Both the position numbers and the translations under genes were made by a program. 64,000 nt of DNA, taken from sequence record OQ708376.1; one strand, 5' to 3'. The notes beneath the pieces were generated by a model, which saw only the letters and a program-made list of their open reading frames with translations, made no database searches and had not been told where the DNA came from. Positions 41,458 to 50,792 of the stretch are shown piece by piece. Position 1 is the stretch's first letter. Each line of letters begins with the position of its first letter.

Positions 41458-41486
41458 AAGCTCGTCTATTGACGGGCTTTTCTTTT
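41458..41486 (+). terminator. intrinsic terminator
   Basis: AAGCTCGTC-tatt-GACGGGCTT then T-rich run. Confidence 0.75.
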
Positions 41487-41497
41487 ATGTGTATAAT
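41469..41497 (+). promoter_or_regulatory. sigma70-type promoter overlapping the terminator
   Basis: TTGACG-N17-TATAAT with extended TG. Confidence 0.75.
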
Positions 41498-48250: not shown

Positions 48251-48279
48251 TTGACATAGAAAAAGTAATTATGTATAAT
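48251..48279 (+). promoter_or_regulatory. consensus sigma70 promoter
   Basis: TTGACA-N17-TATAAT with extended TG. Confidence 0.85.
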
Positions 48280-48280
48280 T

Positions 48281-48310
48281 AGAGAACTTCATATGGAGTT
48301 CTCTTTTTTT
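48281..48310 (+). terminator. intrinsic terminator
   Basis: AGAGAACTT...GGAGTTCTCT then T run. Confidence 0.75.
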
Positions 48311-48323
48311 ATAAGGTGATAAA

Positions 48324-48743
48324 ATGTTAAATGAACGTATTAAAAATGCACTACATGTATTGAATCAAGAAGTCAATTCTATTCATAAAAGTACTGACCG
48401 TTATAAAGTAATGCATGAAATCAAACAAGAATTGGAATCTATTAATAAGGGAGAGTGGTGGTATCTTCAGCCCGAATATCAAACTCGTGAATTAAACGAT
48501 GTTGAAAAAGAAATTGTCAAATTCATCACTACTCGTTATTGTGATACATCAGAGAATGATGTATCAGCGAACTTCAATCTTACTAAATTGGAAGTCGAAG
48601 AAAAATTCCATTTTGATTGGCTTGATTGGATTGAAATGGTAATGGAACTAGAAGAAAAATTCAATGTTGAAGTTGATGAAAAGTTCGAGAATAATGAAAC
48701 TAAGCTGTATGAACTAGTAGAACATATTCAAAAAATGTTGTAA
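48324..48743 (+). CDS. acyl carrier protein-like protein lacking the phosphopantetheine serine
   Basis: FDWLDWIEMVMELEEKFNVEV aligns with ACP DSLDxVELVMALEEEFxxEI; Ser is Trp (TGG 48618-48620). Confidence 0.75.
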   Translation: MLNERIKNALHVLNQEVNSIHKSTDRYKVMHEIKQELESINKGEWWYLQPEYQTRELNDVEKEIVKFITTRYCDTSENDVSANFNLTKLEVEEKFHFDWLDWIEMVMELEEKFNVEVDEKFENNETKLYELVEHIQKML

Positions 48744-48796: not shown

Positions 48797-49171
48797 ATGA
48801 GTATGTTAGAAATAATTGTTTCAAAAATTCTTATTCCATTTTGGAAACCAATTTCTTTTGTATTATTAATTGGCGGTTCAGCTTATGCTGGTTGGGAAGC
48901 TAATACTTATTACAGTGGATATCAACAAAGCATAGAGCAACAAATAGCTAAAAAAGTTGATACCGCCTTGGATAAAATGCAACAAGAAAATGCAAAAAAT
49001 TACCTTGAAACTAAAAAAATCATGGAAGATAATGCTAAAGTTATTGAAACAAAGGTTCCTTTTATTGTAGAACGTGAAGTTTATAAGAATGTATGTTTAG
49101 ATGAAGATGGTGTAAAAGTACTGAATGAACTAAAACAAAATTCTCAAGCTGCGAGGAATAAATTCAAATGA
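48797..49171 (+). CDS. i-spanin (Rz-like)
   Basis: N-terminal TM helix, coiled coil, C-terminal VYKNVCLDEDG; overlaps a lipoprotein gene. Confidence 0.8.
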   Translation: MSMLEIIVSKILIPFWKPISFVLLIGGSAYAGWEANTYYSGYQQSIEQQIAKKVDTALDKMQQENAKNYLETKKIMEDNAKVIETKVPFIVEREVYKNVCLDEDGVKVLNELKQNSQAARNKFK

Positions 49172-49476
49172 AAAAATTATTAGTTCCGTTTATTTCTTTT
49201 TTAATTATAAGTGGATGTGCAGAACAAGTAAAACTACAATCCCCTACACCAATTAAACAAGAAATTCTGTTAGAAAGATGTGATGATGATACACCTCTAC
49301 CACAAAAAATTATGATTGACAAAAATGGTTTTAAAGGTTATGATGGTGCAGAAATTCTTAAAGTACTTACTCGTTGGGATGCAGTATACAACGAATGTGC
49401 TTTAAAACATGATGCATTAATTAAAACTATTCGTGATTTACAAGGTAAAGATATTAAAATCAATATCAAGGAATAA
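49168..49476 (+). CDS. o-spanin lipoprotein (Rz1-like)
   Basis: Lipobox ISG-C; later C residues and YNECALKH; ATGA overlap. Confidence 0.8.
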   Translation: MKKLLVPFISFLIISGCAEQVKLQSPTPIKQEILLERCDDDTPLPQKIMIDKNGFKGYDGAEILKVLTRWDAVYNECALKHDALIKTIRDLQGKDIKINIKE

Positions 49477-49477
49477 A

Positions 49478-50089
49478 ATGAACAAATATCATGTTTACTA
49501 TACGACCAAATTATCACTTCTTGACGAATTAAATCAACGAAGTACTAAGATGAAACGCTACACTTTAAATGGTATTACTTTTCGATATTTCCCACAAAAA
49601 GTTCTTACATTTATTAAGAATCCAAAATGCGTGGCATGTGGGATTGAAGCTACTGAAGTACGCATTGAACGTTCATTATGTTCTGATCCAGTATATGGTA
49701 AACCACATTTAAATGTATATGCTGTATGTGGTCTTTATGAAGTTTTAATGACAGTTGACCATAATCATCTGGCATCTAAGGGTGGACCTGATTTAGAGTC
49801 AAACTTTAATACTATGTGCTCCAGATGTAATCAACTACGTTCGAATAAAACTGAAACAGTTGATGAGTTTCTTGAGAAAGTTAAAGGTCGTAATCTTCTC
49901 CAAGAACATATGAATAATTTCTTTAATGTACAAAAAAAGAAAAATAACATTGACAAGTCGAAACTACTAGAAGAACGTAGGTTACGTCAAGAATTATGGG
50001 AAACTGATCATCTATGGCATGTTCGAGAGTTTGGTCGTCATATGAAAGCATTGAAAAAAGAACAGAAGAAATTGAATAAACATGATTGA
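49478..50089 (+). CDS. HNH endonuclease
   Basis: CVACG...TVDHNHLASKGG...N...MCSRCN; AAGGA upstream of ATG 49478. Confidence 0.85.
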   Translation: MNKYHVYYTTKLSLLDELNQRSTKMKRYTLNGITFRYFPQKVLTFIKNPKCVACGIEATEVRIERSLCSDPVYGKPHLNVYAVCGLYEVLMTVDHNHLASKGGPDLESNFNTMCSRCNQLRSNKTETVDEFLEKVKGRNLLQEHMNNFFNVQKKKNNIDKSKLLEERRLRQELWETDHLWHVREFGRHMKALKKEQKKLNKHD

Positions 50090-50100
50090 TATGATATTAT
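50072..50100 (+). promoter_or_regulatory. sigma70-type promoter immediately before a terminator
   Basis: TTGAAT-N17-TATTAT with extended TG. Confidence 0.5.
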
Positions 50101-50130
50101 AGGGACTTGAGTATTCAAGTCCTTTTTTTT
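50101..50130 (+). terminator. intrinsic terminator
   Basis: AGGGACTTGA-gtat-TCAAGTCCT-TTTTTTT. Confidence 0.85.
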
Positions 50131-50142
50131 TGGAGAAAATAT

Positions 50143-50415
50143 ATGAAAACAAAATTATTTCCACAACAAATAATGATTGAACTGTGCGAACATCAGTCTG
50201 GTGAAGTTGTTACAATCAGTGGTGATACGTATTCCATCATTTTAAATGAACAACAATTTGATCATACAAACCATACGAATGAACTGTATAATCTTATGTT
50301 TATGGACGATAAGAGTGAAAAATACTATCATTGTACATATGAACGATGTATAGATACAACACCATTTTGTAATGAAATGGTTGGTGTTAAATGTTATGAA
50401 TGTGAAGTGTTATGA
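50143..50415 (+). CDS. hypothetical protein, duplicate copy 1
   Basis: MKTKLFPQQIMIELCEH...KYYHCTYER; GGAG upstream of ATG 50143. Confidence 0.7.
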   Translation: MKTKLFPQQIMIELCEHQSGEVVTISGDTYSIILNEQQFDHTNHTNELYNLMFMDDKSEKYYHCTYERCIDTTPFCNEMVGVKCYECEVL

Positions 50416-50435: not shown

Positions 50436-50792
50436 ATGAAAACAAAAATCTTTCTACCACAAACCATGATGGAACTGTGTGAACATGATGCAGGGGATGT
50501 TGTCACTATTAGTGGTTCCTGGAATGAGAGTACTGAAGACTTTATGCCAGATGAGGTATATTCTGTTGTTTTAAATGAACAGTACAATACAAGCCGTTGG
50601 AATGCACAGTACAATCTAGTTTTTCTTGACAATAACAATGAAAAGTACTATCATTGTACGTATGAACGAGGTCTGACAGAACGTAACTACACAACTCCTT
50701 TCTGTGATGAAATGGATGGTGTAAAGTGCTATGAAGTTTATGTTCGTCAGGTTCCAGTTGTTACTTACAAAACCGAGTGGGATTATCTGTAA
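50436..50792 (+). CDS. hypothetical protein, duplicate copy 2
   Basis: MKTKIFLPQTMMELCEH...KYYHCTYER. Confidence 0.75.
   Translation: MKTKIFLPQTMMELCEHDAGDVVTISGSWNESTEDFMPDEVYSVVLNEQYNTSRWNAQYNLVFLDNNNEKYYHCTYERGLTERNYTTPFCDEMDGVKCYEVYVRQVPVVTYKTEWDYL

Follow-up and report, generated by a model that had tools for sequence, protein, structure and literature searches.

The sequence analyzed here, a 64,000-nucleotide stretch of record OQ708376.1 referred to as the window, encodes a 139-amino-acid protein on its + strand at 48324..48743. The gene, of the 121Q gp510 type, was assigned from a list of open reading frames (ORFs) and from a match to the family PHROG 18343. Judged by its sequence and its predicted fold, the C-terminal domain of the protein is a homolog of acyl carrier protein (ACP). 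Because Trp replaces the residue equivalent to Ser36 of Escherichia coli AcpP, the alignment indicates that phosphopantetheine cannot be carried at the canonical site, and no second D-S-L motif was found anywhere in the 139-amino-acid protein. The pattern of substitution indicates that the domain is still under purifying selection after the loss of Ser. We hold with moderate confidence, all versions of this reading taken together, that the protein would act as a cofactor-independent binding module derived from ACP.

Acyl carrier protein homology and the residue at the serine site

Residue 99 is Trp, encoded by TGG at 48618-48620, and lies within F-D-W-L-D-W-I-E-M-V-M-E-L-E-E-K-F; alignment to AcpP puts helix II, the docking helix, at residues 98 to 113 (48615..48662, + strand). 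In a HMMER search against the PDB, W99 was aligned on the DSL serine of solved ACPs, with the Plasmodium ACP 3gzl as the best match (E value of 9e-4), and of the 63 PDB matches listed, more than 50 were to ACPs. The ACP families PHROG 5934 and PHROG 4154 were matched with E values of 1e-7 and 5e-6, and PHROG 18343 was matched over the full length (1e-61). The match to TIGR00517 had an E value of 2.6e-5 (24 bits, against a cut-off of 70), and that to Pfam PP-binding_2 (PF14573) had one of 1.6e-3 (19 bits, against a gathering score of 32). PF00550 was matched by 8 of 12 family members, with E values up to 0.01 and a best value of 1e-9, and a profile of the phage family reached hundreds of bona fide bacterial ACPs at E values of about 1e-10. 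When the window protein was aligned with AcpP from the E. coli K-12 record, W99 corresponded to S36 and W102 to T39, while D98 (D35), L100 (L37), D101 (D38), E104 (E41), E110/E111 (E47/E48), and F113 (F50) were retained.

An AlphaFold2 model built from an 11-sequence alignment had a mean predicted local distance difference test score (pLDDT) of 84, with values of 88 to 94 over the ACP domain. It predicts an N-terminal helical hairpin that carries an R26-Y27 pair (residues 1 to 44, 48324..48455; helices 2-19 and 25-41), a linker of low model confidence (residues 45 to 56, 48456..48491), and an ACP-fold domain (residues 57 to 139, 48492..48740; helices 59-71, 99-113, 119-122, and 128-138), the last placed by both fold and sequence matches and all three on the + strand. 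The first 49 Foldseek matches were all ACPs, with target template modeling scores of 0.7 to 0.77, and the all-against-all structural search VIA-align gave, for residues 56 to 139, a Z score of 8.9 and a root mean square deviation of 2.3 Å over 78 residues. Over the linker region (residues 41 to 60) the pLDDT was 57 to 72 and relatives differ by insertions and deletions; the linker and the loops are the least conserved segments of the protein. For the hairpin, the VIA-align search returned generic hairpin matches only, and a search of the ESM Atlas with residues 1 to 58 gave no usable match. An earlier note on this DNA had described the C-terminal part as an ACP match with Trp99 at the invariant Ser, preceded by an extension of about 60 amino acids, and had named a fold unlike that of ACP as the result that would speak against it. 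The match is borne out by HMMER, PHROG, TIGR00517, Foldseek, and VIA-align, the structural matches are to ACPs, and the extension is real, with two predicted helices.

DNA identity places the window in an Asteriusvirus jumbo phage of the 121Q/PBECO4 group. Over 3.5 kb its identity to Escherichia phage vB_EcoM_CRJP21 is 100%, and that to 121Q, PBECO4, phAPEC6, and further Asteriusvirus jumbo phages, with genomes of about 350 kb, is approximately 98 to 99%. The protein itself is 100% identical in 121Q (gp510), phAPEC6, CRJP21, and BF17. Site 99 is Trp (TGG) in the 121Q group, which is at least 92 to 96% identical to the window protein, and in the Ecwhy_1 group (72% identity). It is Ser (TCA) in the UE-S1 and A4 groups (65 to 71%), Asn (AAC) in Turkey5 (35%), and Thr (ACA) in the Alcyoneusvirus phages RaK2 and Muenster (30%). 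More distant genera were reached through the neighboring spanin gene, as a tblastn search with the RaK2 protein did not reach the genera with DSLD; one with the window protein found no Aeromonas phage. In these, namely, the Munch-type Salmonella phages, Eneladusvirus (pEa_SNUABM_12 and fHe-Yen9-04), and Mimasvirus (GAP32, CBB, and XbC2), the motif is D-S-L-D. The homologs of the distant genera have 134 to 142 amino acids, the equivalent slot, and the same hairpin-plus-ACP layout, with the exception of EJP2 (below). A maximum-likelihood tree was built from 28 sequences, 13 of them from other genera, and all 13 carry Ser in DSLD. The Trp sequences form a single clade (bootstrap and Shimodaira-Hasegawa-like approximate likelihood ratio test support of 93 and 91) nested among Ser-bearing Asteriusvirus sequences, and the tree requires four state changes, each of them a loss of Ser (to Trp once, to Thr twice, and to Asn once). 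Since the distant genera keep DSLD, the tree indicates that Ser is the ancestral state and that the Asteriusvirus/Alcyoneusvirus branch lost it on at least four occasions.

The variants, the codons, and the tree led us to reject a sequencing error or a private mutation of this isolate in an otherwise normal phage ACP, an explanation to which we attach a negligible probability. A Ser codon TCG could in principle become TGG by a single base change, as the earlier note had remarked, but the nearest Ser-bearing relatives use TCA, which is two changes from TGG. Trp was present in each of the 18 distinct variants that were read from the two W-type clusters (for the larger cluster, 14 of 24 members were read, and its listed variants lie on more than 100 contigs). 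The two W subclades, both with Trp, share just 72% identity. The RNA-derived data on this region consisted of short contigs from wastewater metatranscriptomes, and one of these, an independent contig that covers 48510-48717, differs from the window at three other bases and has the TGG codon intact. When IMG/VR was scanned with a degenerate nucleotide pattern spanning the Trp codon, the only matches were to 121Q itself and, by chance, to one unrelated sequence. The earlier note had proposed reading the site across phage homologs, with Ser in all close relatives as a sign of error; the closest relatives proved to have Trp, and the next ones Ser, Asn, or Thr. Taken together, these data indicate that Trp has been fixed under selection and did not arise as a mutation of a single isolate. 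In the UE-S1 cluster, five variants have Ser and one, P0144, has Thr. The latter is known from one Logan contig of a UE-S1-like cluster, is more than 90% identical to Ser-type proteins, and reads D-T-L-D-W; it represents either a further independent loss of Ser or a read error.

The homologs share the R-Y hairpin and the C-terminal ACP domain within 131 to 142 amino acids, directly 5' of a pair of spanin genes. The largest departure is in Escherichia phage EJP2, where the ACP domain is deleted and a 50-amino-acid ORF (EJP02_158, excerpt L010:2266-2418) that aligns to the hairpin lies between the nucleotidyltransferase and spanin genes, with 76 nt left before the spanin gene. This hairpin keeps the RY pair and is closest to the Munch type. 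The hairpin of the window protein has its nearest relative in the Ser-type UE-S1 (84 to 86%) and the ACP domain in the Trp-type Ecwhy_1 group (69 to 72%); these discordant identity matrices of the two domains suggest recombination between the gene halves among Asteriusvirus phages. GAP32_159 of Cronobacter phage GAP32 is annotated as an ACP of 84 amino acids only (excerpt L012:2129-2383). The open frame there starts at 1967 (L012:1967-2383), and its 138 amino acids include the conserved hairpin, just as the CBB and XbC2 proteins do. In assemblies of the Salmonella phages SD-15_S21, SD-6_S16 (P0004, P0131), and SD-1_S14 (H22), the C terminus of the protein is frameshifted or cut (192 amino acids with an unrelated tail, 126 amino acids, and 83% coverage), which reflects either assembly errors or a broken gene. 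Apart from those few assemblies, the frame is open in the remaining cluster members that were read.

Selection on the domain and possible roles

Pairwise ratios of nonsynonymous to synonymous substitution (dN/dS) were estimated by the Nei-Gojobori method on short sequences whose comparisons are partly saturated. Between the window and Ecwhy_1, both with Trp, dN/dS was 0.12 in the hairpin and 0.32 in the ACP domain at a dS of 0.53, and the other informative pairs gave 0.13 to 0.32 for the ACP domain. Among 14 Asteriusvirus and Alcyoneusvirus sequences, helix II (residues 98 to 113) was the most conserved segment of the whole protein. Across six genera, only Y27, D98, and D101 were invariant and only R26, E104, E110, and F113 nearly invariant, while W102 was invariant in Asteriusvirus and Alcyoneusvirus and variable elsewhere. 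Because dN/dS is 0.13 to 0.32 and helix II is the most conserved segment, the ACP domain appears to be under purifying selection after the loss of Ser and not to be drifting freely. Replacement of Ser with purifying selection kept, which characterizes cofactor-independent ACPs, is thus what the Trp clade displays.

These observations fit a protein that would function without phosphopantetheine in the Asteriusvirus/Alcyoneusvirus branch. Helix II would dock through its acidic face (D98, D101, E104, E110, and E111) on a basic surface, in the way that ACP binds its clients, and the R26-Y27 hairpin would supply a second contact or a tether. Within this reading, we tentatively propose as the most likely use that of a competitor which cannot be modified and which occupies a host ACP client that accepts apo-ACP. 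During infection, such a competitor could slow membrane-lipid synthesis in the host or impair its handling of the chromosome. Three clients are candidates. PlsB may be one, being strongly inhibited by apo-ACP; the account of Keating 1995 cited in PMC3896788 describes apo-ACP as a potent growth inhibitor that acts through glycerol-3-phosphate acyltransferase. For AcpS, recognition requires D35, E41, and E47/E48 (bioRxiv 10.1101/2025.01.28.635281), and by alignment the window protein retains all of these residues, which would make AcpS a possible client as well. MukB could be the third, as it is activated by apo-ACP as well as by holo-ACP, its ATPase being stimulated equally by apo- and holo-AcpP (PMC8602292). 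SpoT and IscS were considered and rejected on the published need for the holo form: according to a review, apo-ACP is not bound by SpoT (PMC3896788), and IscS binding requires Ser36 and is lost in S36T, a laboratory ACP variant without the cofactor (PMC13343975). The RaK2 ortholog, with Thr at the site, is in effect a natural S36T.

Parts of this scheme had been anticipated in the earlier note. A host decoy is plausible, and a binding or decoy role is reasonable because the acidic docking residues of helix II are retained; SpoT, which the note had listed among the targets, is unlikely for the reason given above, and no evidence was found for the ACP-dependent defence that it had also suggested. 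Its idea that Trp imitates a loaded group has a precedent in Phe113 of the Plasmodium mitochondrial ACP (mACP; PMC8547962), but the orthologs with Ser, Thr, or Asn speak against it. Because the orthologs carry these residues, no particular side chain seems to be required at site 99, which looks free to vary rather than specially designed. A bolder version of the competitor, which we regard as doubtful, is that Rak2-like phages deploy a dedicated mimic of the host ACP hub, a permanently apo competitor at the sites that tolerate the apo form. The R-Y hairpin would then add a second grip or block the client; at the PlsB site phospholipid synthesis would be shut down, and through the MukB arm the MukBEF condensin would be disabled. 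If true, the phages would possess a host-takeover protein of a new class, namely, a protein-cofactor mimic.

Several observations weigh against a selected binding module in the ACP domain. Taken alone, the window protein is under the curated cut-off of every Pfam and NCBIfam ACP model, and the match to the NCBIfam models weakens in the Ser-less lineages, from an E value of 3e-15 for GAP32 to 2.6e-5 for the window protein and no match at all for RaK2. In the Trp clade, the hairpin has a lower dN/dS than the ACP domain (0.12 versus 0.32), and EJP2 lives without the entire domain. Because the ACP signal fades in the Ser-less lineages and EJP2 has lost the domain, the domain may be dispensable. 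Ser-bearing orthologs in the equivalent slot could be true carriers whose function changed later, and the position beside the spanins could, together with the virion data considered below, point to a role internal to the phage. In a rival reading, the hairpin would be the working part and the ACP domain, jobless after the loss of Ser, would be drifting toward deletion; the lone 50-amino-acid hairpin ORF of EJP2, the replacement of Ser by four different residues or events, the lack of any NCBIfam ACP match in RaK2, and the lower dN/dS of the hairpin all favor it. However, a dN/dS of 0.13 to 0.32 in all informative pairs is far from neutral, helix II is the best conserved segment in exactly those lineages that lose Ser, W102, near the site, is invariant in them, and the W-type domain is intact across about 30% amino acid divergence. 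We therefore consider a decaying domain improbable.

Somewhat unlikely, in our judgment, is an adaptor that binds phage proteins, either as a factor related to assembly or lysis or as a packaged acidic protein, in which the ACP fold would be a stable acidic scaffold and the hairpin the specific contact. The position 5' of the i-spanin and o-spanin genes is invariant in the loci examined, even where the ACP-like proteins are less than 20% identical, and in the window one promoter and one terminator bracket the ACP-like, spanin, and HNH genes. Additionally, the hairpin is conserved more strongly than the ACP domain, and the Eneladusvirus homolog was detected by liquid chromatography-tandem mass spectrometry of virion preparations (PMC7760394). 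Those preparations also held lysis proteins, however, so that carry-over is likely, and the spanins act in the periplasm, whereas the ACP-like protein has no signal or membrane segment. The Rak2-like genomes are collinear over long stretches, the downstream gene for a starvation-inducible DNA-binding protein being conserved too, and this makes the spanin neighborhood weak evidence of a common function. Moreover, the conserved residues of helix II are exactly those that ACP uses on bacterial enzymes. More improbable still is a pairing like that of LYR proteins, in which the R26-Y27 hairpin clamps the acidic helix II of its own domain or of host AcpP and Trp99 fills the interface that acyl-phosphopantetheine fills in the Ser-bearing relatives. 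It would account for the fact that R26/Y27 and D98/D101/E104/E110/F113 are the only residues conserved throughout the family and that the lone hairpin of EJP2 retains the RY pair, and it has a parallel in Plasmodium mACP, whose Phe113 packs against Tyr, Arg, and Lys of Isd11 and is needed for binding (PMC8547962). Yet the hairpin has two helices and not three, with generic fold matches only, and the low-confidence linker supports no docked arrangement. W-type and S-type ACP domains occur with either hairpin type, and Ser, Thr, or Asn at the site cannot fill a hydrophobic pocket. As an actual member of the LYR family the hairpin was rejected, since it had no Pfam match to Complex1_LYR.

Partner enzymes in the phage genomes were searched with the Pfam families PP-binding, ACPS, AMP-binding, and PlsC-type acyltransferase only. 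A related record of 348,532 bp, which has 54% of sampled words in common with the window, contained no second PP-binding domain and no ACPS domain (AcpS-type transferase), and GAP32, CBB, pEa_SNUABM_12, Munch, and A4 contained no ACPS, AMP-binding, or PlsC-type acyltransferase domain. Lipoprotein acylation draws on phospholipid donors and not on acyl-ACP, and on this ground we also rejected a role of the protein in o-spanin lipidation. That role had been hinted at in the Eneladusvirus paper, which remarked on the ACP beside the spanin (PMC7760394).

Promoter, transcription unit, and neighboring genes

The promoters, hairpins, and genes placed between 48251 and 50131 in this section are on the + strand. 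The earlier note had let its feature begin at 48251, which is the -35 box of a promoter; the gene proper, present in the ORF list, begins at 48324. The promoter that it reported is there, a TTGACA-N17-TATAAT site at 48251..48279 that matches the sigma-70 consensus at 12 of 12 positions and would presumably act as such. It is the sole perfect site in the 64-kb window, in which sites with at most one mismatch number 13, against 2.1 expected, with 12 of the 13 on the + strand. Two bases 3' of the -10 box begins a terminator-like element (48281..48311), not mentioned in the earlier note, which consists of a hairpin with a 10-bp stem and a 4-nt loop (48281-48304) and a following T-run. A putative ribosome-binding site, AAGGTGA, was read from the sequence at 48313..48319, 4 nt 5' of the ATG. 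The expected transcription start, at about 48286, would fall within the 5' arm of the hairpin, and thus the hairpin should block read-through from the tail gene while sparing transcripts from this promoter. A second promoter-like site at 50072-50100 lies immediately 5' of another terminator-like hairpin (50101..50131; hairpin at 50101-50124), so that the pairing of a promoter with a terminator hairpin 0 to 2 bases behind it is seen two times within 2 kb (48251-48311 and 50072-50131). Such a cassette may end upstream, possibly late, transcripts while launching a new one. A further near-consensus promoter, at 41469-41497, precedes the gene block that contains an RlaP-type nucleotidyltransferase gene.

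Downstream of the ACP-like gene are those for an i-spanin (Rz-like; 48797..49171; PHROG 1152, E value of 7e-29), for an o-spanin that overlaps the i-spanin stop (49168..49476), and for an HNH endonuclease (49433..50089; PHROG 23285, E value of 1e-130). The o-spanin is a lipoprotein with a lipobox and a weak LysC/Rz1 match, and its homologs are annotated as o-spanin. Because the match to the HNH family runs from residue 16 onward, the true start of the endonuclease is likely to be the ATG at 49478 rather than the listed GTG inside the o-spanin gene. The next terminator comes only with the hairpin at 50101-50124, and the ACP-like, i-spanin, o-spanin, and HNH genes therefore likely form one transcription unit, which that hairpin would close. 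Host RNA polymerase probably transcribes the gene from the consensus promoter together with the spanin and HNH genes. The earlier note had taken the promoter as a sign of early expression. The promoter and hairpin are kept in UE-S1, A4, and Turkey5, with the TTGACA of the -35 box exact in all three, but Ecwhy_1 lacks the promoter and has the ACP-like gene directly after the nucleotidyltransferase gene. In genera other than Asteriusvirus, the small gene in front reaches the ACP-like gene or overlaps it with its stop codon, which leaves the latter no room for a separate promoter; in Munch, a terminator is annotated 3' of the ACP-like gene. These exceptions weaken the suggestion of early expression, although the sigma-70 site is real and kept in three relatives.

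The order ACP-like, i-spanin, o-spanin was found in all Rak2-like genera examined, with loci from Asteriusvirus, Alcyoneusvirus, Munch-type phages, Eneladusvirus, and Mimasvirus. The HNH gene comes next in Asteriusvirus (EJP2 apart), RaK2, Munch, and fHe-Yen9-04, and no HNH gene follows the spanins in the pEa_SNUABM_12, GAP32, CBB, and XbC2 loci. Upstream is the RlaP-type nucleotidyltransferase gene, accompanied, depending on the phage, by three or four small genes or by inserted tail genes, which in the window are a 178-amino-acid ORF and a gene for a 929-amino-acid tail protein. A blastp comparison of the small genes 5' of the ACP-like gene in RaK2, Munch, GAP32, and pEa_SNUABM_12 with the upstream ORFs of the window found no counterparts. 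Beyond the HNH gene are two tandem paralogous small ORFs (50107-50415 and 50436-50792), both starting with M-K-T-K, with relatives at the same position in EJP2 and Munch. The listed TTG start of the first overlaps the terminator hairpin, for which reason an internal ATG is probably its true start.

Comparison with known systems

ACP is among the most connected proteins of E. coli, serving lipid, lipid A, biotin, and lipoate synthesis and binding MukB, SpoT, and IscS. Across phage records, the window protein is labelled "hypothetical," "acyl carrier protein," "acpP," or "D-alanyl carrier protein," and the last three labels can be corrected, as the canonical carrier site appears to be absent. 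Annotated phage ACP homologs were already known, as were their spanin neighborhood (PMC7760394) and the cofactor-free ACPs of apicomplexan mitochondria. We did not find described the Ser-less state in Asteriusvirus and Alcyoneusvirus, the repeated loss of Ser on the tree, the conserved hairpin, or the domain deletion in EJP2, and the papers searched held no experimental study of the ACP homologs of GAP32, CBB, fHe-Yen9-04, and pEa_SNUABM_12. The family is a natural experiment in which a docking helix is kept under selection after Ser was discarded at least four times, so that the fold probably serves binding alone here. Knowing the partner would uncover either a new route by which phages seize the lipid or chromosome metabolism of the host or a new phage-internal function of the carrier fold, and it would yield a ready-made ACP probe that cannot be modified. 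The natural Ser, Trp, Thr, Asn, and domain-deleted variants constitute a built-in allelic series.

Like the ACP of bacterial type II fatty acid synthesis (E. coli AcpP; TIGR00517, PF00550/PF14573), the window protein has a predicted four-helix fold with detectable sequence homology and the helix II pattern D-x-L-D-x-x-E...E-E-x-F with its acidic docking residues. Unlike AcpP, it has Trp for Ser36, a second Trp (W102, invariant in Asteriusvirus and Alcyoneusvirus) for T39, and a 56-residue N-terminal hairpin plus linker, and in phages of the window type no ACP-using enzymes were found with the Pfam families searched. With GAP32 gp159, CBB gp163, fHe-Yen9-04 g153, and pEa_SNUABM_12 gp158 it has in common the slot before the spanins and the hairpin-plus-ACP layout, those proteins having 134 to 142 amino acids; however, these annotated phage ACPs keep DSLD and match PF00550 and the ACP equivalog models far better (3e-15 for GAP32). 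Similarly, E. coli apo-ACP and S36T are nonmodified ACPs with helix II intact, but both are forms of the host's own ACP obtained in the laboratory, whereas the phage protein, which has the extra hairpin, shares about 25% identity with AcpP across the domain. The closest parallel in the residue itself is Plasmodium falciparum mACP, an ACP fold selected without Ser and with an aromatic replacement, which is free of the cofactor and acts as a binding subunit through its acidic helix II face (PMC8547962). It differs in that it belongs to a eukaryotic organelle and requires Phe113 for its binding to the LYR protein Isd11, whereas orthologs of the window protein tolerate Ser, Thr, or Asn at the site.

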